Source of the DNA: Tubulanus polymorphus
Lineage: Eukaryota; Animalia; Nemertea
DNA length: 64,000 nucleotides
NCBI RefSeq assembly: GCF_964204645.1
Contig: NC_134035.1
Location: forward strand, 2,604,001-2,668,000
Reading direction: 5' to 3'
Shown here: positions 1 to 24,426 of the stretch, in pieces
Numbering within the stretch: the stretch's first letter is position 1
Layout: each line of letters starts with the position of its first letter
Notes under the pieces: model-generated
Seen by the model: only the letters and a program-made list of their open reading frames with translations
The model's database searches: none
What the model was told of the DNA's origin: nothing
Position numbers and translations under genes: made by a program

Positions 1-1359
1 ATGTCAGATTGGATAGAGTCAATCCTGACAAAATAGTACTTGATTATAATACCGTATGTGGAGAATGGCATGATGATAACGGAAAAAAAATATTAAGTTC
101 GAAAGTGTTTTCTTGAGCTATTTTCTAATAGTCACAACACTAGCATTTTATCAATGGTTAATATTGGTCCTGATTCCGTAGCGCTAAGATACTGTGCTCA
201 GATAGTTTCTGCCGTATATGTGCCGGGTAAATGTATATATGTTACTTTGGAATTAATCGTACGTTTGTTATCATTTCCCGCGAGCCTGGGCTCTCGTCTT
301 CCAGTGACAAAAGCGCTAAATGTTATCTTGTATAGGTTTGTAGGCTTCTAAGTTGGAAGAATGTGCTGAACAATTTATTTAGGCTATATATCGAACATCA
401 TTATTCCAGCAAGTTGTCTTAGCCTGGTGTTCATATTTTCAAAAAGGACGAAAAATAGTAGGTTTAATTTTGGCTCATTAGGGGCACTGGGTACTTCGAA
501 AGGCTCATGAAACTCACTGGAATCCGGCTGTTATTTTCAGGCTTATTTCTCGTTATATTATTAACACCTTTGTTTAGTCGCGAGGTGCTGTAATATGTGT
601 ACATTGTATTTAAATTATAAATAATTGAAAAATTGCTGGGAAAAACGAATTTGATTTTGTTGTTGATTGTAGGAGATATTATTCACAGGATAGCGGTTGT
701 CAATTGACACCTGAAGATTCTATCAGCACCAAATTAAATTGAATATACAGTTAAACGACGTTGATACGATTCTGATAAAGACAAAATCCGTTAATTAAAT
801 CGTACGATGATTTCCAGCATTTCCCAAGTAAGATATTTATATCAATCCAGATTTTGATAATACAACAATATCACTTTCGCCCACAAGATTTGTATGAACA
901 AGATTCCAGTACTAGTTTATCCACACACGGGGGCCTGCGGTACAAACATTTACTACTGGTAGAATCACAGCGGTGGCTAAATTTGGAGAGGGGAGCTGTT
1001 GGGAATCAAGTAATTTATTTTATGCTATGGCCTTATTACAGTTCCACGATATTGTTCAGCTGCCTACTGGCGCGTGTTCAACCCAGTGCAGGAACCTAAG
1101 CTCAATGTAAATCCATTCAACAATAGAAAGACACAATGGTGGTTTTTCATAGTTGTTGATATCATTTACACGTGCTATTGATGACAATTGTGCTCCTGTT
1201 CCTGCTTCCTGAGGAACGACGTCTTTATGTTTTATGTGTTACTGTTCGTCTCCGTACTGTCCTGTACTGTTCCGTGTTTATTAATCCGTTCTATTTTTCA
1301 GGTTCTAATCCGTTTTATTTTTCAGGGCCGATTTCTCTGTCGAATTTCAACGTTTGCTG

Positions 1360-2160
1360 GAACAAAACTAATGTCCGAAAGCGTCAGCTCTCCGTCGCCG
1401 GTCACGTGTCGAGGATGTCAGACAAAGAGCCGGTCAGGAAATGGCTGACCTCTACACGCCCTCATACGGAACATGAAAACCAGGATGACGAGGCCTTACT
1501 CTCCCCACCTATCAACAGAGAGTGTGCTAGGTGACGTCAATGACGGGCAGATCTGTCGGATTGTTTGCAGTGAAAATGGAGTGGTAAAGCTGGACTGTCT
1601 ACTAGTATTCATTGATTCCTTTTCAGGAATTGCTTCGGGCAAAGATTTGTCTCTTGTCTTCCTTTGCGTTCTAGCATTCATTGATTCCTTTTAAGGGATT
1701 GCTTCGGGCGGGGATTAATTTCCCTGTCTTCCTTTGCGTGCTAGGATTCATTGATTCACTGTGGGATCGCTTGCATGCTAGCATTCATTGATTCCTTTTA
1801 AGGGATTGCTTCGGACAGGGATTAATTTCCCTGTCTTCCTTTGAGTGTTAGTATTCATTGATTCCCTGTGGGTTGCTTCGGGCAGGGATAAGTCTTGTCT
1901 TCCTTTGAGTGCTAGTGCGGGCAATCCAGTTGCGCTACTTTATTTTTGTCACAAGCAATCTTGCAGGTTTATCAGTTACTGACGTCACGCAGCACACCCT
2001 GTGGGTAAATGGTGAAAGTAAGGCGTCGTCATCCTGGTTTTTGTGTTCTGTGTGAGGGCGTGTAGAGGGCAGTATATTCCTGGCTGGCTCATTGTCTGGT
2101 GTTCTCGGCATGTGACCGGCGAAGGAGAGTTGTAAAGCTTTCGGACATTAGTTTTGTTCT
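1360..2160 (+). repeat. Long imperfect inverted repeat (arms ~1360-1606 and ~1911-2160) enclosing a tandem array
   Basis: GAACAAAACTAATGTCCGAAAGC at 1360 is the reverse complement of GCTTTCGGACATTAGTTTTGTTC ending at 2160. Similarity continues inward to the ACTAG/CTAGT borders of the array. Each arm carries a TGACGTCA (1532-1539, 1980-1987). Confidence 0.92.
1602..1915 (+). repeat. Tandem array of ~70-bp units (four near-full, one truncated)
   Basis: Units start at 1602, 1671, 1741 (37 bp), 1778 and 1848; consensus CTAGCATTCATTGATTCCTTTTAAGGGATTGCTTCGGGCAGGGATTAATTTCCCTGTCTTCCTTTGMGTG. Confidence 0.93.
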
Positions 2161-2711
2161 GTACCAGGTTTTCATCGCTCTTCTCTTTTTTCATTTCAGG
2201 ACTCCCAAGATGAAGAAGAAGATGCTGAAGGCGACTACAACGAAGACAATGTCGAAAAAAGAACACTGAACTCGGCAATATTGAAAGTTAAGTTGATATA
2301 CGTGTAAATTACGATATATGATACAGAAAGGATTGTGTAACTACAAAATATCATTCTTTTGCTCATTTCAGCTTAATCTGGAAAGGCCCAGCCGATACTA
2401 AACCCAGTTATCTCGAAAGGTAAGTTGACTTATATGGAATTTATTATGATTAATGCTATATATATGAAGAATTATGTATATTTCAAGATATTGTATAATT
2501 ACAGGATATCTTCTTTTACTCGCTAAGTAACATCTATAAGACAAGCTCAGCCTGAGATCAATTAGTCATCTAGATTCTACTGATTAAAACAGCCAACAAA
2601 AGATTCCATCTTGAATTGAACTCATCAACTATCACAGCTAGAAATCTAGATTCAGCCAGCATTGGTTTATCGCCCAATGATTGATTTCTTCTACAATAGG
2701 TGGAGCAGATA

Positions 2712-2882
2712 CAATGCGCGTCTTATATATAAACACTTATTCAGGAGCAGCAGAGACAATGCGTATATTATGAACACTTATTTAGGAGCAGCAGAGACAA
2801 TGCGTATATTATAAACACTTATTCAGGAGCAGCAGAGACAATGCGTATCTTATAAAACACTTATTCAGGAGAAGCAACGACA
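2712..2882 (+). repeat. Minisatellite, ~41-43-bp unit x4
   Basis: AAACACTTATTCAGGAGCAGCAGAGACAATGCGTATATTAT repeated. Confidence 0.9.
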
Positions 2883-4742
2883 GTAGAATATGTGAAGTAT
2901 TGATTTATTCTACGTATCACCTTTTTTCAAACCAGTCTGATGGGTACCATGAGTTTACAAAATTCATTGTCTATTTGAAGGGGTGGAATAAACTATAAAG
3001 AAAGAGTTTTAATGTTGATTAATGAAAATTGAAGTTAGGTAATTTGGGCTCTAGGCCTGAGAAGGAACTATTCATATTTGAATATTTCAATAAAATGGCA
3101 TCCTCCTGATTCTTTATATTGATTAGGCAAACTGTTTTTGATTTGTAAACAGATGAGTCATTAAAGTCCTTAAAGTTTGTTCTTGAAGTCTCATAAAATC
3201 TACGCTCCATTAATTCATCATATTGATCGCGTATAGCGTCTGGGTTCGACTCGTAGGTCAGTTGAAATACACTTAAACTGAGATATAGTATCGACAGGAT
3301 AGTTCAGATAAGCTTCATACATTAGTTAAACATAGCTTTGCATGATTTGTAATAATGACATAGTTTATGGGATGAATACTCTTTTAGTTTTTATGGTTGT
3401 GGGCCATAGACGTTTTTGTTTTATAGAGTCCATGATTGGATTGTTTTTGAAATACAGTCCACGTGTTTGAGGAGCTTACATAATAATTCCTCGAGCACAA
3501 ACCTGGCATTTTTTATAATTGTTGTATGAGAATAAATATGATTGTTTGAAATTCTTCATTTGTTTATTTAATTAGCTATTCTGAACTTTCTTTTCAACCG
3601 ATTTATTTTATTTTAGGGCCTAACATTTTTTCTGCCGAATTTCTGGATATTTTTCTCACAGAAATAAATAAATTTTTTGCGTACATTTGTGATGCATATT
3701 TTGTTGCGTCTTTTTCTTTCACCACAGTTAGTCATGTATTTTTAATTCAAATCATGGTTGAATTTCAAACCCATCATTTATCTATTACAAACTATTTTCA
3801 TTAGATTGAATAGGTTCGCGGATTTTTTACTTCATCATGTTTAGAAATATTTTGGGAAGGATTAGCCATGCATTTACAGTATCTGATGCTATAAACATCA
3901 TCGCTCCGTCATGCTGAGTTTACATTTCACATTCAACCAGTATCTACATGCAGCTGTACAGTGTGGCTGGAATAACAAGCTCACTTCATGTAGGCGAGAC
4001 ATGGGCATGGCACTTATTTGATCCCCTCCTCAAAACACTCAAAATAAAAAGTCAAACAGGCACAGGGTTTATCAAACAAGATGACAGAGAATGAATAATT
4101 ATGAAAGTGAAACCAACCAGTGTGTTTTGACAGATCAGAATGTCGGAAGGCGTCGTGGTAGGCCTATATAATGGTCTGCCGATCACACAGTCTATGGAAT
4201 AGACTGTCTATTCCATCGAATTTATCCATCTGTGCAAATAGAAGCCGGTATCTGTTGATGAATATAAGTCTCTATAAATGGACACGATTGTTAAGAGAGG
4301 AGATGAAGAGCTGTCAGTCGGTAGATGCGCCGGTTAATCAACTTCATTTGTGAAATCCTGATACTTTTTTGCAGACGGAATACGAATATGGTGAAATCGT
4401 TGTAGTGTAGCTACAGTGATTTTTCTATCAAATCGCTCACGTGCCACAGTAGAACAGCGAGCTGCGTCAGATTTAAACAGTCAGGTGCTGTCGCTAGATA
4501 TAACGATAGCGGTGAAAACGCGAACTAACATTTTACTCACTTGCCAGAGTCTTCGAACTGTTAGAACGGACACAATATTTACCGCAAAAAGACGTTCTTA
4601 TGACGTACAGCACTGATCGCTCTAACAGCGGGCCGGACTCGAGAAAAAATTATGAAATCCTTCAAACAGCATTAGAATTACAAACTAGCCAATTTTTCTG
4701 GTTGAAGATCAGTCAAATACGAAAATGGAGAGTGCTAAACAA

Positions 4743-4991
4743 ACTCACTCACTTACTCACTCACCAATTTACTCAATTAACTCTGGTCTCCTCTGGTATA
4801 CATACCCCTGTTTTTAGTCTATATCTCACACCTGACGATGATCTCTAGGTGAGATCGAAACGTCGTGTATTTTATATATTTCAGATTGTTCGAATTAATA
4901 AATTTCTTGTTTTTAAATTCTTTTAATTTGTAGATAGTGGGTTTTCATCTTATTATCCGTTCACCACGTTTGAGTGTAGTTATCGTTCTAT
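4743..4991 (+). mobile_element. Penelope-like element pLTR fragment (249 bp) with hammerhead, flanked by 12-bp TSD
   Basis: AGTGCTAAACAA direct repeats at 4731-4742 and 4992-5003; internal hammerhead core followed by AATAAA, as in PLE pLTRs. Confidence 0.72.
4828..4868 (+). ncRNA. Minimal type I hammerhead ribozyme
   Basis: ACAC-CUGACGA-U-GAUCUC(UAGGU)GAGAUC-GAAA-CGUC-GUGU: stem I ACAC/GUGU, intact core, 6-bp stem II, palindromic ACGU in place of stem III, GUC cleavage triplet. Confidence 0.8.
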
Positions 4992-5358
4992 AGTGCTAAA
5001 CAACATTTTTTGTTTGGCGAAAAGTGGAATTGTATTCATAAAAAAATTATTTTCACACTAGCCATCGAAATGGTCTTACTATTATTGAACGGGCGGGTGC
5101 GTGTTGCTTTTGGACACATTTTCGGTGGCTAATATTTCATCCACTTAGTTGAACTATGGATGACTAAATCCCGGCCCGGATTTTTAATTGATGGCGTCAA
5201 TTAAAGTGACTTTTCCAGCGGTGTGTCTCACTAGAATATTACTTGCTCCAGCTTGCGTCATTAATGACATTTTTTATTCGCCAGTTACTTGAAATTCTTT
5301 CTAAACGAGTGGAGAATTACAAAATAATTCTATCATTTTCGGCCCCCAAAAATATCGA

Positions 5359-5553
5359 TTTTAAAAACAAGAATTTATTTATTCAATCTAAAATATATAG
5401 AATACACGACGTTTCGATCTAACCCTAGAGATCATCGTCAGGTGTGGATCTCTAGGGTGAGATCGAAATGTCGTGTATTCTTTATATTTTAGATTGAATA
5501 AATAAATTCTTGTTTTTGAATTCTTTTAATCTGTAGATAGTGGGTTTTTATCT
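5359..5553. mobile_element. Inverted pair of Penelope-like pLTR fragments, same family as 4743-4991
   Basis: Minus copy ~5359-5446 abuts a 5'-truncated plus copy 5447-5553, making a palindrome with ~70-bp arms. Confidence 0.75.
5404..5445 (-). ncRNA. Minimal type I hammerhead ribozyme
   Basis: Minus strand ACAC-CUGACGA-U-GAUCU(CUAGGGUU)AGAUC-GAAA-CGUC-GUGU. Confidence 0.78.
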
Positions 5554-6149
5554 AATAATGTGTAAAAAGTTCTATTTCGATAAATAGTTTGTCCATGATG
5601 CCTGTTCAAGGACTCTGGCAAGCGAGTAAAAAGTTAGTTCCAGTTTTTACCGCTATCGTTGTACATAGGGGCAGCACTTGATGGTTGGTATTTGATAAGG
5701 CTGGCTAACGCTTGCGGGCCGGATAATTATGAAATTCTTGAAACAATACTGAAACTACTCAACTGGCAATGCATTTCTATCATAAATACTAGCAAAAAAG
5801 AGAAAAAAGCTAATTTGAATTGGGAACAGGAGTGGGTGCCAGTTCACCAGCCTGGTGATTACAATCGAATCGACCAATACAAATATTCATTAGTACATTC
5901 ATCTTTTTTCTATCATCAAAATGTTAATTTTCCCTAAAATCAGAATAAAAACCTCGAAACAAAAGGAAAAATTACTTACCCTACTTATTTACCATTAAAA
6001 TTCAAAAGCTTTATCTTCCATCATGTCCATATGAGGGACAACCATTTCTTCCATATCTGGACCTCGTTGCAACTGCAGTACATACTGGATTTTCGTAAGA
6101 AAATGTCCTTCAAAGTGTAAATTATGGTCTGAACGTCTTCGAGTACTAG

Positions 6150-6400
6150 GCCCACTCAAACTGGCAAATCAAAACGATTGTCTAAGGTGATATACCTTGT
6201 ACACCTCTGGCTACAGCACAGCGACTATTTGTGTCAAAGTTAATGCACAAACGACCATCAAATTCCGCTTCTTTAATTCTCTTTAGACGAAATCTATCGA
6301 ACTGGGTATCGTGCCACAGCCGAGTGATGTTCGACTCGCATATCCAGCCAGAGAAGATTATCGAACCATCCACGCTATACAATACAGGGACTACGGACAT
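6150..6400 (-). mobile_element. Highly degenerate non-LTR RT fragment
   Basis: SVDGSIIFS and AVARGVQG-ISP loosely resemble the RT motifs DSVDR.. and GVPQG..ISP. Confidence 0.3.
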
Positions 6401-7402
6401 TCATGAGTGATCTTCAAGTGAAGAAAATCAGGGCGGAAAAAAGACTCGAGAAAACGAGCGAAATTTTCGTATAAAAATCACTTTTATTCAACTTCGCGAA
6501 ATGTCCTCGCTACAGACATACAATATATATAAATCAGATGAAAAATCATACAATATAATAACAAAATATTGGTCGGAATCTTTAATATGTACATTGTGTA
6601 TACAATAATAATAAATAAAGATAAATATCTCTTTCATGAATTTACAATATTTTTCAGGGTCGGAACGAGGAGATTATGGAATGAGAGAGAATACAAATAT
6701 AAACAGTCTAAGTTTGCGACGAGTAAATGTTCATATATTTGGCACATGATACGCTCGTAAAGTTATCACAGACTGATTATCGATCGATTCATCCGCCTCG
6801 TCGAAAAGATTATCTATAAATCTCGATTAGAAAACCGAGCTAGGGCGACCGGGCGCTATAGGTTCAGCAGATTTCAGTCAATATATCAATATATGTAAAA
6901 ATAAGTAAAGACGATGCACACTTGTGTCCTGGACTAAGTTCTACAGTTCTCGATTAGAGTAAGACATTGGAAATTAACTAAAGCACGGTTTGAATGAAGC
7001 AGTAAGGTTTAAGCGAAAGTTCTGGTAACAAACCACTTTTTAGCACAGCAAAGGTAGCACTTTTTCAGTGAATCGTGCCTATGTTATACGTTTTAACTGC
7101 TCATTATGATTTGTCAAACCGCAATAATCTATGGACAAATCACTTATGTCATTCATGCACTAGTTGCATGTGTCATCCAGAAGTAACGCGTGCTTAGCTT
7201 TTGATTATTCCATCAATGCTTAGTATGTTACAATTATGAATGCTGCGATAAAAAGTTTTCAGATGGTTTGTAAGTCATAAGTAGCACCTTCCAGCACTAT
7301 ACAACATTTTTGTAAAAGGTTAGCGCTAATCAGCAGCGCATCAACAGATCGTTTCTAAAAAGGGACCGGTTGTCCAAAAGTTAGTTACATGACAAGTGAG
7401 TA

Positions 7403-7504
7403 GACAAGAAGTACGCCTGATGATGGCTAACAGTTGTTAGCCGAAATATAATCATTCTGATAAAGAATTTTTCAATCTTGGCTTCGTTATTGTGGGATTT
7501 CTCT
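7403..7504 (+). mobile_element. 102-bp retro-insertion with hammerhead core, flanked by 15-bp TSD
   Basis: CATGACAAGTGAGTA at 7388-7402 and 7505-7519; inside, CTGATGA-T-GGCTAAC(AGTT)GTTAGCC-GAAA at 7417-7446; stem I looks degenerate. Confidence 0.7.
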
Positions 7505-8108
7505 CATGACAAGTGAGTAACCGAGCATTTTACTTAAAATGATATCAATGCCAACAATTTTCTAATGGAGGTATCTACAAAACCTATGAGCACGGAGATA
7601 AATATCGCATACTACCGGTAAATAATATCTATAAATGAAACATGTACGAAAGCGTCCTATTCTATATCTATTCTCTAGCTTGAAATGAGCCACACGAAAA
7701 ATAATCATCGATAACTGACTGATGTACGATTCTTACAAGCATCTCACACAAGCATCATTCATTATCTCACACCGTTTAAATGGCAGTGATTGACATTAAT
7801 TTACTCAGAATCTTTTTCTTTCATTTCTCTTTTTTTCGAGTTAAGAAGTTAACACGACAGAAGTTGTTTTTACTCGGAACATTGCGCAGTAAGAAAGCAA
7901 ACCCTTCACATAGTTCAACTAAACCTTACAGCACGGTGCAACTGACTTTAACCGATGCAATCCTATTGCTGCCATTTCTCGAAATATCTATCGGTAAATT
8001 TTTCAACTGCCATATTTTCGAGACGACGCACGTTTAGAGAGTATTCTCTCCACGCTGAACAACGACGATGACGAATGATATCGCAGTCGTCGCCGTGGTT
8101 TTCATTCG

Positions 8109-8990
8109 CTACATCGAGAACACTTCGCACCACAACGGATGTTTGTTCATTTCCGGCCAGTCGATGCGCAGCTTCGCGATGACGTCCATGTTTTTGATGG
8201 CGAGCTCGCGCACCGACGGCAAATAGCTGAGAATACGTCCGAAAACGCGCGGGTCGTCCGGGTGATTGCGTTTCAACTCGTATTCGAGAGCCTGCGCGAT
8301 GATGATCTGCCACTCGCCGATCGGGTCGGGGTGTTTCAGCGGAAAGTGATCTACGTTGAAAAATAAGATTATCGTCATTAATCAATGATTGTTATGCTAG
8401 TTTCTGTCTTCTGGTTAGCGTTAGATTCGATCCCCGGTGAGTGCACGTAACTTCACCGCACTTCCTAATCGTTACAGTTGCCATAAAAGTCATCCTCCCT
8501 CGGCAGGGTTTCGAACCGGATGGCATTGCTATACTCAGCCATAGCACGAAACCCTGCACGATAGCTGAAGTGCGCAGCTTAGATGATGTCATCGTCAGCC
8601 AATCAGAAATCCTGTTTTATACAGGAAGGGGTAGAGATCTATTTTAATAGCTCGCTAGGCTTTACAAATTGCATCTAATAAAATCTAGTCAAACTCGCTT
8701 CAAAATGCTGTTTCCGTTGAGACTAAACTTTAAAAATCATAACCAACACCCACTTACCGGTGTATAACATGACAAGAGCTTTCAGCAGAGCGCGTTCGGA
8801 CGACAGCAGCTTCAACTTTTGAAATTTGCGACACGTCTGAAACATCGAGTTGCAAAACTCGCTGTCCCAAATCGACGAGAACCGTTCGAGATGCAGCGTA
8901 CGTCCGCGATACGTCGTGAACAAGTCGTGATCGAGACAGACGCCTTGATATACACACATGAACCATACCTCGAACCTCCCAGCTGAAAAC

Positions 8991-9030
<40 letters not shown>

Positions 9031-12000
9031 TAATAATAATATATTTCTTATATGATACAGACACTGCACCGAAAAAGGGCAAGTATCTACTTAGAGCAAG
9101 TGTCTGGAAAATAATGAACTATCAGCGCATCTTAATGTAATTTTCAGTTACCGGTATTTGAGTGAAATTAAAGACAATATAAGTTAAGACTGAGGACGGC
9201 TGACTGCTGCTCTACTTTTAACTAGCGGAAAAATTGCCCTGAATAAAACTGTTTGGAAGATGGCAATGTGAGCGCATGCGATCGGTAAAAGTGACCTTAA
9301 ATCTTAAGGCTGGTCTTAAGTTGTTGGATTGGCTAAAATGATCTTAGACTAGTCCGGAGTCAAAGCCATGGAACCCGTCCCTAGAAGTTTACGACAAGGA
9401 TTCTTCGTCGATTTACCTTTCAGCATTCCGGTTTGTTCTTCTATCGACAGATCTTTGAATCCGGGCAATCCTTTACAGAACTGCACGAACTTCTCGATCC
9501 ACTTTACTAATTCCTGCTGCCAGCCGAACACGAGCATGCGTCTGCAGTCGATGTCGATTCCGGTCTCTTCGAAGAAATCGTTGTACTCTTCTTTTGTCAG
9601 TTGGTTCATCGGACCGAACACTTTCGTTCTCGCCGCTTCCATTTCCTGAAAGAGGAATTTACGTTTTTCAGCAAAACGACGAATCAACGATCGCTAGATT
9701 TTTCCAATTCGAAACAACTTTTCCATTTTTTCCCCTGAAAGCCTGGATAGTGTTTTTGGTTGTAACATGGTGGCCACTATTATTGACTTGCTTCTCCCCC
9801 GACTATTCCCTGACATGCGCATTGTTTTCCCTGACTAGATCTGCTAGGAATCTTATCAATTTACACGGTCAAATATGCAAGATATAGACGAAACCTGTTT
9901 TACGCGCAATCTAGCAATCTCAACAAATTTCCTCGACTTCTAGCTTTTTTTCGGAAATTCCCCGATGATTTTTAAAGAAAAGAAAGTCCCTGACTTGTTC
10001 CCTGATTTCCAGCTAAGTGGCCACGCCGTTGTAACGATAGAAGTGCCTAAAACTAGGAGTCCCAATTTTATGTTTAAATCAGTTAAATTTGAATTGTTGT
10101 CCTCATTGAAAACATGAAGTAACCAATAGCAATTGCAGCAAAAAGTTTAGAAAAACTTTTTCGTGAAACTGGGTCCTGGACTTGCGGCGCTTGGACGCGC
10201 GGAGGTTATCCCGAATTCGAACGTCTTCAAACAAAACGCTACACTTACGAGAAATTCTTGTTGACTTTTCTGCGCTATGAACTCGAAGTCGGGCGGGTGT
10301 CGGTTGATCAGATGGTCTAATTCGATCACCTGGTTGATTATGCTCTGGATTTCGGACACTTTGTTCTCGAGTATCGTCGACGCGACCTTCGCTTTGCGCA
10401 GTTCTTTCATTTCGACGATGTCTTTCGTTTTCTTCGCGTGCGTATATCGTCCAGTTTTTATAGCTGCAAGAGATATTCGAAATAAAACCCGAATGAAAAT
10501 TTTGATGAATTTGATTTAAACGCATTTTGAAAATTTGATCTCAATGCATTATATAACGGGCATGACACCATATTGCATTCATACCGCGGTGCGGTGTATC
10601 GACAGTTACTTATATTCTACTATGTTGCACAGGTGCTGCCATCTTTCAAAAGATTACAACTCATTGATTGTTACATAATTACACCCCAATGCGATGTATT
10701 AGAAAAGTGAATAGCACTGATTCATACACCACCATGCGATGTAGAGACACTGTTCAATAATGATAATGATAATAATAATGAAAATGAATAGATAGACATT
10801 TAGGACTGCAGAAAAGAAATAAAGCAGGAATGAAAACTATGATGAATTTGATTCAAATGAATTTTTGAAAATTCGATCTCAATGCATTGTATAAAGGGCA
10901 TATATTGCATCTACACTATATTGCATCTACAGCATGGTGCGGTGTATCGACAGTTACTAATATCATACTATGCCATCTTTCAATAGTTACACAGATACAC
11001 CCAAATGCGATGTATTAGCAAAGTTAATAGCACCAATTCATACACCGCACTGCAAAGTACTATCTTGACAAGATACATGCATCCCAAACCTTAGACGTAC
11101 CTTTTTTTGACATGCCGACTTCGAGACATTTTTGGTATCGACAGGCCGGGCACGCGCTGCGCTGGCCCGTTTTGATCTGGCACATCCTTTCGCACTGGTG
11201 CGACGAACTTTTGCTGAAGATGTCGTCCTTTTTTCGTTGCAAACACCGTCGGAAGAATCCTTTGCACGCCTCGCACGTGTTGACGCCGTAGTGTAGGCCG
11301 GACGCGAGGGCGCCACACACGCGACACGGTGGTAACAACGGCAGCTGATCGTTACTAACACTTGAACCGGACGGTGAATTCGAAGAGACGTCTGAACAGC
11401 TGTTGAAGCTGTTTGGGCTGCATGGCGACGATGGATCTTTCTGTAAATAATAAATATTCAATATTTAGCTGATATTGTATTGCGTGTAAAATATTGGGTA
11501 TAGACAGCCGATTGTCTGAGGGCTGGGTACAGACAGTAGACTGTCCGAGAGGGTTGGGTCGACTGTCCGAGAGGGTGTAGGGTACAAAGATGCAATAACC
11601 GCACAGGAATTTTGTCAAAGAGTCGTTCTAAATGCTCAGAAATTTTGCAAACTGTCTGAGGGGAGAGTAACGATAGCAGATTGTCCGAAAGAGTACAGAC
11701 AATCTGCTATCTTTTGTCTAAGGGGAGCAGAGTACAGGCATCAGATTGCCTAAAGGTTGATAGTACTGGATTGACAATTAGTGCATCAACCCACTGAAAT
11801 TGTGAATACCACTTTATAGATATGTTTTATAGATAGAAAAAACCAGAAAATATTACTTTATTCATGTCAATTTTCAGGCTTTGTTCAACGACTGAGTGTC
11901 ATGCGCCGATTTGGTTCAAGCGATCAAAGCACGTGGGTGGATATCCATTCAACCGTTAAACCGGTCGATAGAAAAACACTGATCATTGAACGACTCGACA

Positions 12001-21200: not shown

Positions 21201-21779
21201 TTCATGCTAAAAAACTGCATTTACTATGATACAGAATCAGCTCACTTCAAATTTCATTTTTCACGTATTACAAGTTTTTGTTATTTTTAATAAATAGTCA
21301 GCGCTTGAAAAAGGAATTTCGGTAAATTTACGCTTTTAGATGGCATTTCCTGCATCAAAAATCATTATTTTCAAAAAATAAATTCTGGTATTTTCCCTTA
21401 CATTTTCTTAATGCTTTTTTTTCAACAACATTTGATCCAATAAAGGGATGTCCTTTTAATCTGCAATAGGCCTATCAGTTATTACAACAAATAATGGATC
21501 CTTGTTACAATTGAACATAATCGAACATAACTCCAATACGCTTACTCACTTATCAATCAGGGACGGGGTTGAGCTTATTTGACTAGTTGGATCGAACTTG
21601 TGCTTTCACCAAGACGCCATCTATCAATAAGCATAACCGATGAAAATTTCACTACACGCAAGTTTTACATGCACGCATGCCACCTATTTTCAAACATGAA
21701 CTATGAGTTAAGTCAAACACATGAATAGGGGTTGCCTACTAAAGTCTATCTATTTTTATCAGGGATCGATTTTCTTTGG

Positions 21780-22210
21780 ATATTTCTCTCAATCTTTTGA
21801 ACATGTAGGCTACATTAATTTGGTCTTAATACGACCAATGAAACTGTGCAGTCTGAATAAACCATTGTTTTATATCCATTTTACACCGTATTGAAGGTTT
21901 ATGATTAAAAGAGAAAAGATCAGCCACATTTGAAATTCTAACAATACATTGATGTTTGCATGCTGAAGAACCATGATTTTTGATGATTTTTAATGGTAGG
22001 CATTGAAACATACTGTTAAAATTAATTCAGTTCATAAAATGGAGTCTCTTTTCTGTGATTCAAATGAGTTAGCCTAATGAAGACTTTTTGCCAATTCTTC
22101 AAAACAGTGTATAAAATGGATTTAGAAATCATGGTTAATCTAGACTGCACAATTTCACTGGTCATATTAAGACCAATTAGAGGAATGTGTTCAAAAGATA
22201 AAAAAGAAAT
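21780..22210. repeat. Old foldback element with ~100-bp diverged inverted arms; related copy at ~36880-36990
   Basis: TTGGTCTTAATACGACCAATGAAACTGTGCAGTCT versus AGACTGCACAATTTCACTGGTCATATTAAGACCAA. Confidence 0.65.
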
Positions 22211-24426
22211 CTTTTCAAAAAAATATATCCCAGACAAAAATGATTAGACCTGGCCTAACAACTCAATTCACCAATAGTTGAGTAAACCATGTGGCTATAA
22301 AACTGGTGGAGGGTCAGAAGTTTAAGCCATTGGGTTAAAAGTCTACTTAAAATAAATCGAACGAACCTGACCCTGGACTAGAGGCTATGGAGCTCTGGCC
22401 CGCACAGGCTTGAACTTGAAATCGAAGAATGCATAAGAAGACCTCGTCCTCATATCTAATTTCAAAAGAACTAAGAAATTCTTTCATAGTTTTTAGTTTC
22501 TGATGGCTATATCATGGTTTTAAACATAAAACTTACAGCTCTTAAAGGTTAGGAAGGGCAAACTCTCTGGTCTTACACAACTGTGGTACGTTACAACTGA
22601 CTGAGCGTGGTATAAACAGACTAATTCAATTTCAACTTATTGACGATTAAAACTTTATGCAACTCATTGATTTAACAGCAATACAACTGAACTTACCGCA
22701 GACATATCGGTTTTAACTGGATGAGCGATGAAAATTCCACTTAAACCATTTCGTTTAACATTTTAACGACTTTGAAAAGTTTGAATACTTCCTGGAAAGT
22801 TTGTTTCTGTTGTGGCATGCCCAAAGACACCGTATAGTGCTGCCCCCATCGAGTCATATGCGAACTAAATCATGAGATCGGGTTCGAACCCGTGACTCCG
22901 CTCGAGGATTTTCTTTAGAGTTAAAAAAGTTTTTTTCCATATCCTTTACCTTTAGGTAATAAAACTTATTTTGAAATTTTTTCAATCAGCCATCCAGATG
23001 GCAGTCTGGAACGATTCCCAAGATGCAAGTCCAAAGCCGAACAAAGGGAGAAATCAATAGTCCTCGCATACATACAGTAACGAATACCCAACTGTAGCAC
23101 TTTCCATATTTCCTTAGAAAAAACACCACAAACTCCAGTGTCAAATAAAAAGCTCCACGATCAACTAAGATCAGAAATTGATATTTTCAATTCGTTCAAA
23201 ATCAATTTATTTACAAGAATACGTATCAAATGATATACAATCGGATATGAATAATATCGATATATAGATTTGATATTGTGTATTTACATCATATAGAATT
23301 ATCAAGAATATAATTATACGTACAAAATGATATAGTACAAATTAAACACAGCCGTACGATGAAATATTCAGAAGCGAACTGAACGAAAATAATACAATTA
23401 TATATATAATACATGGTAATAATACAAGGTTTAATTACAGTTATTGAGGTTTATAAAATTAGAGGCAATTTCACAACAACAAAAAAACAAGACTCGAAAC
23501 TCTTCCTTCCTAATTCAGTATAAGGAGTTCAGATTAAAACTCTCTAGAGACCATCATCATCTTTTTGATATTTTCGATTTCAAATCTTGATAAATGAATT
23601 TCGCGATTTTAATCTTCGAAATTCGTAAACGGTGGGTTTTGATCTTAAGATCCGAGTGGCTCTTCCAATATTTAGGAGTTACACCAGGTCGAGGCTCTTT
23701 TAACCCTTTTAGTGCATCTACACCGCAGTGCGATGTATAAATCGGGTAATGGTGAGGGTTTATACGAGTCTCTCCGTCGAAACTTTTCATGGGCGAAACC
23801 AGGCCCCGAATCACCGCCGCCCGGACACCCAAATTCAGAATATTCCCAAATTCAGAATACTTATAAACTATATATACAGACCAGCACAGATTCGGCCGGA
23901 ATTCTTAATTACGCTTTACAAATTATACATCGTATCGTAAATAACTTGAGAAACCGTTGTATACAAAATAGGAATGTTATCAGAAATAGATCATACTTTC
24001 ATACTGTAAATCAGTTGAAAAAAGCGCAGAAAAAATTCTTAAATTTAAAATTCATGCATCATTTATCCGATATGATATAAGTGATATGATGGTAAGATCG
24101 GTTCTAAAAATCATGCTTAAATATAGCGCGTATGTATATGTACGTAGATATATATATATATATGGACGGAATTGCGATTTATATTTCTACAATATGGAAG
24201 AGCGTAAGATTATAATATAAGTTTTTACAAGATTTCACAGTTTGTTTCTAATTCTTTGATTTTAGTAGTCTTAATGACAAACCTCTGCACCAGTTCCAGC
24301 TGGCCCTAGTATCTACATACATCGGTGTCATGGCATAGGTCTTAGAAATGTTCAGTGGACGATGTTTGTTCTATAGCCAGGCAATCTAACAACTTAGGAT
24401 GCAAGGCCATTATTGGACTTAAATCA

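Follow-up and report, generated by a model that had tools for sequence, protein, structure and literature searches.

What does a long inverted repeat record when its two arms have come to differ mainly by changes that one strand, folded as RNA, can accommodate as G.U pairs? The question is raised by an ~800-nt foldback near the start of the window, as we call the whole 64,000-nt stretch of Tubulanus polymorphus DNA analysed here (contig NC_134035.1, positions 2,604,001 to 2,668,000, forward strand). The stems of hairpin-RNA (hpRNA) genes in Drosophila are G.U-rich, and the original prediction, made from the letters of the window alone, accordingly saw either a locus of that type, selected to fold as plus-strand RNA or ssDNA, or the trace of a strand-specific mutagen. 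The best reading of the evidence assembled below is that the foldback is a real, selected RNA module present in many copies; it is hpRNA-like in form, and as to identity a candidate hpRNA only.

The foldback itself, with its arms of ~245 bp, was confirmed by formal alignment. Positions 1360-1610 set against the reverse complement of 1907-2159 give 190 Watson-Crick (WC) pairs, 34 G.U pairs, 11 A.C mismatches, 14 other mismatches and 6 gap columns; the excess of G.U over A.C, counted by eye as 29:8 in the original prediction, is thus 34:11 in the formal count (binomial p=8.2e-4). The wobbles are found on both arms (18 with G on the left, 16 with U on the left), and the stem of ~245 bp includes unbroken WC+G.U runs of 46, 29 and 24 bp. 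A comparison of the folding energies of the two strands, proposed as a check, favours the plus strand by 132 kcal/mol when the foldback is treated as RNA (MFE -472 for plus, -340 for minus). With DNA parameters the values are approximately -199 and -174 kcal/mol, a plus advantage of about 26; because this difference is small, the strand advantage is chiefly a property of RNA. Two other inverted repeats in the window, taken as controls, have no such bias, with G.U:A.C of 18:14 (49 transversions) and 7:9 (12 transversions). The first belongs to a nest of palindromic MITE-like repeats (4456-5706) with a DNA-run depth of ~70,000 (about 2000 copies); the second is an inverted repeat of ~155 bp, 75% alike between its halves (21744-21896 and 22097-22249). 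The acceptor-like TTTTTCAG sites predicted just 5' of the left arm, at ~1301 and ~1325, do end at 1301 and 1325, and belong to a 24-nt tandem duplication. The foldback had no match in Rfam and ARAGORN found none; no description of a module of this kind was met in Rfam or in the literature searched. Coordinates are collected in Table 1.

Table 1. Features of the window copy and of the boundary motif in related copies (window positions unless a locus is named)
Feature	Position	Strand	Remark
Window copy of the repeat	948-3592	+	internally deleted member of a ~9-11-kb non-coding, gene-like repeat family
24-nt tandem duplication	1282-1326	+	two acceptor-like AGs ending at 1301 and 1325; in most copies
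Foldback, left arm	1360-1610	+	from the arm alignment
Loop	1602-1915	+	four three-way-junction units of ~68-74 nt and one short single-hairpin unit
Full loop units	1602-1674, 1671-1744, 1778-1851, 1848-1915	+	predicted three-way junctions
Short loop unit	1741-1781	+	single hairpin
Foldback, right arm	1907-2159	+	overlaps, at its inner end, the stem that closes the last loop unit
Exon-like segment	2200-2286	+	TTTCAG acceptor, GT at 2287; acidic reading frame
Exon-like segment	2372-2419	+	ends AAG before GTAAGT; crosses the internal-deletion junction of the window copy
Acceptor AG (2503-2504) and following candidate exon	2503-2752	+	match to a contig of run X1
41-bp tandem repeat in the element	2724-2876		
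[quoted passage not shown]
Boundary motif TAGACTGGT	L024:2421-2471, L026:1820-1864, L028:3216-3240, L029:1854-1934, L032:3585-3623, L036:~3670-3690	element orientation	

The reading of the foldback as a single locus has to be given up: it is the internal module of a dispersed repeat of ~10 kb, with some 300 copies. The nearest named matches, in Lottia and Helobdella, are weak evidence for a lophotrochozoan host. Matches to the left arm mark at least 316 candidate places in the 268-Mb genome, the best of them 88-94% identical, and the depth of a DNA run on the arms (~10,000, vs ~33 on unique DNA) gives, as a rough measure, roughly 300 copies. The genome-wide search with the arms, suggested as a source of both copies and targets, yielded the copies; no target was found. 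In all 20 loci that were cut out, left arm, loop and right arm follow in the same order between flanks common to all; the shared unit exceeds 6.5 kb among the ten-kb loci and comes to about 9-11 kb by coordinate searches. A deletion near 2390 has removed about 5 kb from the window copy relative to L029. The family is mosaic, in that copies 94-97% alike in mid-element bear different hairpin subfamilies; for this reason, and because copies were picked by the left arm, a low divergence of the hairpin relative to the mid-element was not counted as evidence.

Some features of individual copies may be recorded here. The full-length copies L029 (8320-9380) and L033 and L038 (8500-10000) contain a 116-bp tandem array and tandem exon/intron-like modules of ~240 bp; in each module ~24 nt separate two acceptor-like AGs, just as in the pair before the left arm. 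The matching parts of one copy (G000:C4:24559130-24582690) span about 23.5 kb, twice the usual length, and could hold an insertion or autonomous cargo. The 3' region of L005 (G000:C4:~26202020) enters a long (TA)n tract, and many copies have a perfect 12-bp hairpin close to the 3' end.

In its repeated acceptor/donor modules the unit resembles a gene, and in the window copy splice motifs occur on the plus strand only. It is not now a protein-coding multigene family: 11 of 22 copies retain an intact ~149-aa frame across the left arm, exon lengths vary modulo 3, and no homologue was found. The frame of the exon-like segment at 2200-2286 is shifted among copies, so this is not a kept coding exon either. 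Searches for a protein from which the arms might derive gave sub-cutoff matches only in Pfam and none in a 5.8-billion search; one profile-search match, P0001, was rejected as the translation of a tandem repeat that scores through 30 weak stretches. No long ORF was found in L029.

When the bias arose can be read from the way it is divided among copies. All 21 measurable copies have more G.U than A.C and fold better on the plus strand; they are not independent observations, because they share one common ancestor, and they were sampled by likeness to the left arm of the window copy, a further large and diverged subfamily (bit scores ~112-125) lying outside the sample. Their consensus has 33 G.U, 10 A.C and 13 transversions. 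Changes of WC pairs that are private to a copy comprise 23 G.U, 23 A.C and 43 transversion mismatches; those that are shared comprise 23, 12 and 7, respectively. The consensus differs from the private changes (33:10 vs 23:23, Fisher p=0.015), the bias of the shared changes by themselves being weak (23:12, p=0.09). At paired non-CpG sites, 18 transitions and 4 transversions are shared vs 34 and 35 that are private (p=0.012), to be read beside some excess of transitions among shared changes in the element flanks too. A neutral simulation, in which a perfect repeat was mutated, with the spectrum of the family, until equally diverged, gave means of 15.1 G.U, 13.3 A.C and 27.6 transversions; 33 G.U, or as few as 13 transversions, were reached in 0 of 1500 runs. 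Finally, the subfamily of the window copy (L001-L005) differs from the rest at 22 paired columns, and these differences include 11 WC/G.U toggles, 2 WC/A.C toggles and 4 double changes. The shared and private changes, the simulation and the subfamily data together indicate that the bias was built up on the lineages that founded subfamilies, and that the sampled copies have since decayed neutrally.

Selection on pairing of the plus-strand RNA is the best account of this pattern, and we consider it probable. The predicted selection for a plus-strand fold is upheld in this sense, with RNA favoured over ssDNA as the folded molecule (an advantage of 132 vs 26 kcal/mol). It makes a clear case of RNA-structure selection read from repeat copies, with the bias on internal branches and the private changes neutral. 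The simplest rival is chance: one ancestral inverted repeat, biased by luck, was then amplified. That the 21 copies share an ancestor agrees with it, as does the choice of this bias from among many inverted repeats examined; however, luck has to contend with the simulation (p<1/1500) and with the fact that subfamilies (11:2) and loop units have gone on to differ by changes that keep pairs, and we regard it as extremely improbable.

A strand-specific mutagen, the other branch of the original prediction, is disfavoured: the flanks are symmetric over 3.4 kb, and an ADAR or APOBEC neighbour signature is absent. Outside the paired part of the element, over 3.4 kb, the rate of C>T is similar to that of G>A (0.061 and 0.063 for shared changes, 0.113 and 0.106 for private ones), and the rates of A>G and T>C are equal. 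Such equality argues against ssDNA deamination or a transcription-linked asymmetry over the whole unit; transcription-associated mutation asymmetry was rejected on this ground, since it is absent from 3.4 kb of the same ~10-kb unit. No APOBEC-type TC context was found at the changed positions.

Symmetric flanks do fit an agent that acts on the stem alone. A-to-I editing of the stem by ADAR, fixed by reverse transcription of master copies, would give an excess of G.U without any selection, and the observed A.C:transversion ratio of 10:13 is near neutral, as this explanation would have it. ADAR disfavours a 5' G, but a 5' G precedes 10 of 33 wobble Gs and 24 of 87 unedited As (p=0.82); new changes from WC to G.U, among those shared, are mostly C>T (17, vs 6 A>G); and run X1, treated below as RNA, has no excess of A>G over the DNA run X2. 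Stem-specific editing therefore seems quite unlikely. An ADAR hyper-edited retrocopy was rejected as a separate candidate: it should have A>G only and a depleted 5' G, and the wobbles are mostly C>T.

Selection or biased repair could instead have acted on a plus-strand ssDNA intermediate, as in Helitron-like rolling-circle replication, or the ssDNA could have been deaminated. The family resembles Helitrons in its ragged ends, in its captured exon-like pieces and in the tandem repeats that it contains, and the genome has 58 Helitron Rep matches. On the other side, C>T and G>A do not differ off the stem (shared changes), the fold advantage as DNA is just 26 kcal/mol, and no Helitron ends (5' TC, 3' hairpin and CTRR at A|T) were found at 20 5' and 5 3' similarity boundaries; the Rep loci are central on chromosomes (35 of 43 in the central 30%), whereas the family avoids chromosome centres (6 of 110 in the same interval). 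The loop, moreover, shows no flip-flop among copies, an observation that also led to rejection of a parvovirus-like rolling hairpin. We think an ssDNA explanation very improbable.

The loop is itself a structured array. In its predicted fold, each full unit (~70 nt) is closed by a stem and contains two hairpins, with pyrimidine-rich linkers that are invariant. The number of units differs between family copies, and the loop has the lowest divergence within the aligned 4.8 kb (2.3% in the best alignment window). The units differ from one another mostly by exchange of WC and G.U pairs, one column having G-C, G.U and A-U; this pair-keeping lends modest support to selection on pairing, because only three unit types exist. 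No hammerhead core was found in the loop, the minus strand of one unit being only loosely like a type I core, and searches with the loop motif returned 0 matches in viral and metagenome contigs and 0 in phages.

Plus-strand transcription, also part of the original prediction, has indirect support. Three sequencing runs bear on it. Run X2 covers unique sequence evenly and is DNA; X3 resembles a shallow DNA run. Run X1, made from the sample that also gave X3, shows zero depth in three unique bins (4052-4445, 5037-5233, 5825-6415) and a depth of 406 on the 3' region of a neighbouring nuclear-receptor gene, and hence behaves like an RNA run; its kind is judged from depth rather than from its record, and its contigs carry neither strand nor level. 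The gene that supplies this RNA control lies on the minus strand at ~6460-11461 (zf-C4, E 5e-23). X1 covers both foldback arms, and one of its contigs matches 2503-2752 at 248 of 250 positions; as the closest other copy found is 90% identical, the contig most likely comes from the window locus. The match begins exactly at the AG at 2503-2504, with 78 unaligned letters upstream; splicing from the donor that follows 2419 would place the start at 2503, where the contig has it. The joint from 2419 to 2503 is deduced from these positions rather than displayed directly, its depth of 41.4 falling just under that of the lowest joint displayed. On this indirect evidence the window copy appears to be transcribed and spliced on the plus strand; alternatively, the start at 2503 may reflect a structural allele. 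Also present in a deep X1 contig is a short repeat of the dispersed type that immediately follows the element on its 3' side (3793-3965).

How the family has moved is the next matter. No transposase, reverse transcriptase, TIR pair, TSD, Helitron end or hammerhead could be tied to it, so an RNA step in its mobility is a proposal; if the family moves as DNA, the fold would need another purpose. The search for a hammerhead CTGANGA-stem-GAAA core covered both strands of the fetched element parts, which include few true 3' ends, and found none. The 5' boundaries of the copies are staggered. The motif TAGACTGG marks 6 of 20 of them, the boundary lying within ~250 nt of the motif starting TAGACTGGT. 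The latter has 2332 exact copies in the genome, which frequently lie in tiny inverted pairs or in 31/96-bp tandems; at this frequency, chance would give about 0.04 boundary cases. Of the six motif-bearing loci, three belong to one clade, yet their flanks beyond the motif differ. TAGACTGG is also found inverted, 5-14 kb downstream of three plus-strand copies, with no TSD seen; the window copy is without it. As a lead, the boundary motif may be where a mobilising element ends (with the 3' end of a PLE-like element, or with the TIR of a DNA transposon), or else the mark of an adjacent deletion.

One way to understand the fold is then to place its function in the spread of the element. We tentatively favour, with a little less than even confidence, the view that the foldback acts in cis, as a structure in the RNA transcribed from the plus strand of a ~10-kb non-autonomous mobile element. 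On this view, a ~245-bp piece of a decayed intron-containing gene would have given rise to an inverted copy of itself, with a tandem array of junction units between the two; masters that founded subfamilies, on the statistical evidence, kept pair-preserving changes (C>U or A>G to G.U, reversions and a few doubles), with A.C and transversion mismatches relatively purged in the same lineages; the ~300 daughters inherited the bias, and the later decay of the 21 sampled copies has been unbiased; copies, that of the window included, would be transcribed and spliced on the plus strand, as the indirect evidence suggests; finally, and this is the weakest step, the fold most likely would help the RNA of the element to persist or be mobilised, the long stem presenting repeated, sequence-conserved junctions as putative protein-binding sites. 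A role in persistence or mobilisation is suggested because selection acted on copies that spread. Should the fold serve mobility, a large non-autonomous transposon that keeps its introns would here possess a cis-acting RNA element of a kind not yet described.

A second perspective keeps closer to the original prediction and supposes an amplified hpRNA-like family. One or a few functional source genes would give rise to a spliced hairpin, to be cut by a single Dicer into siRNAs for a siAGO-type Argonaute, and so silence a cognate selfish gene or transposon; most copies would be by-products. The ~245-bp stem with its long unbroken paired runs suits this role, as does an apparently spliced plus transcript from decayed coding-like exons. 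In Drosophila, hpRNAs originate from mRNAs and their copy number is variable (PMC10317233), Nemertea are reported to retain siAGO (PMC11114477), and six Piwi-domain loci are present in the genome. However, neither target nor source was found, searches of the own genome being saturated by family copies and protein searches for a target being blank or artefactual; and the genome has one Dicer_dimer locus (this, like the Piwi-domain loci, is a domain match and unclassified). Dicing is not known to need a conserved junction array. Moreover, Nemertea are reported to be without DICER2, with no endo-siRNA signature in the Notospermus gonad (PMC11114477), and the copy numbers given for hpRNAs in PMC10317233, from 4 dispersed to 20 tandem, are far under 300. 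We take the amplified family to be possible, though unlikely. The unique Drosophila-type locus first predicted is not supported: the window has one internally deleted copy of ~300, private changes in the sampled copies are unbiased, and there is the missing target and the one Dicer_dimer locus.

A more far-reaching reading, which we hold unlikely, is of a mobile hairpin-RNA family of ~300 copies: the single Dicer would cut its long duplex, the orphan nemertean siAGO would take up the products, and the junction array would be a recruitment platform. If true, this would be an endo-siRNA system that spreads by itself, in a lineage from which endo-siRNAs are believed to have disappeared. What nemertean siAGO is loaded with, given that DICER2 is absent, is left open by PMC11114477; an apparently transcribed 245-bp duplex in 300 copies is a direct place to look.

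Returning to the selected, multi-copy RNA module of our best reading, four kinds of known system resemble it in part. Like Foldback/Mutator-type elements and MITEs, it has long inverted repeats with internal tandem repeats; unlike them, its inverted repeat is internal, with no TSD seen, and its arms are strand-biased (the MITE-like repeats at 4456-5706 have 18:14). With non-autonomous Helitrons and Helentrons the family shares captured exon-intron modules, tandem arrays (116 bp, ~240 bp, 41 bp) and the lack of a TSD among the copies searched; it differs in that no TC/CTRR termini or terminal hairpin were found and the fold advantage is RNA-specific. Penelope-like elements, with their non-autonomous partners and Terminons (PMC6431247), are also large, ragged units with kept introns, captured gene pieces, structured RNA motifs and a bias to chromosome ends, but here no hammerhead core in the fetched parts, no RT/GIY-YIG ORF and no telomeric-repeat junction was seen. 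From the Drosophila hpRNA genes (hp-Nmy/Tmy, hp-CG4068, hp-ODox; PMC10317233) the family is set apart by its ~300 dispersed, mobile-type copies, by the conserved junction array in the loop, and by a host lineage reported to lack Dicer-2; what it has in common with them is a long imperfect duplex within an apparently spliced, gene-derived transcript, and a labile copy number.
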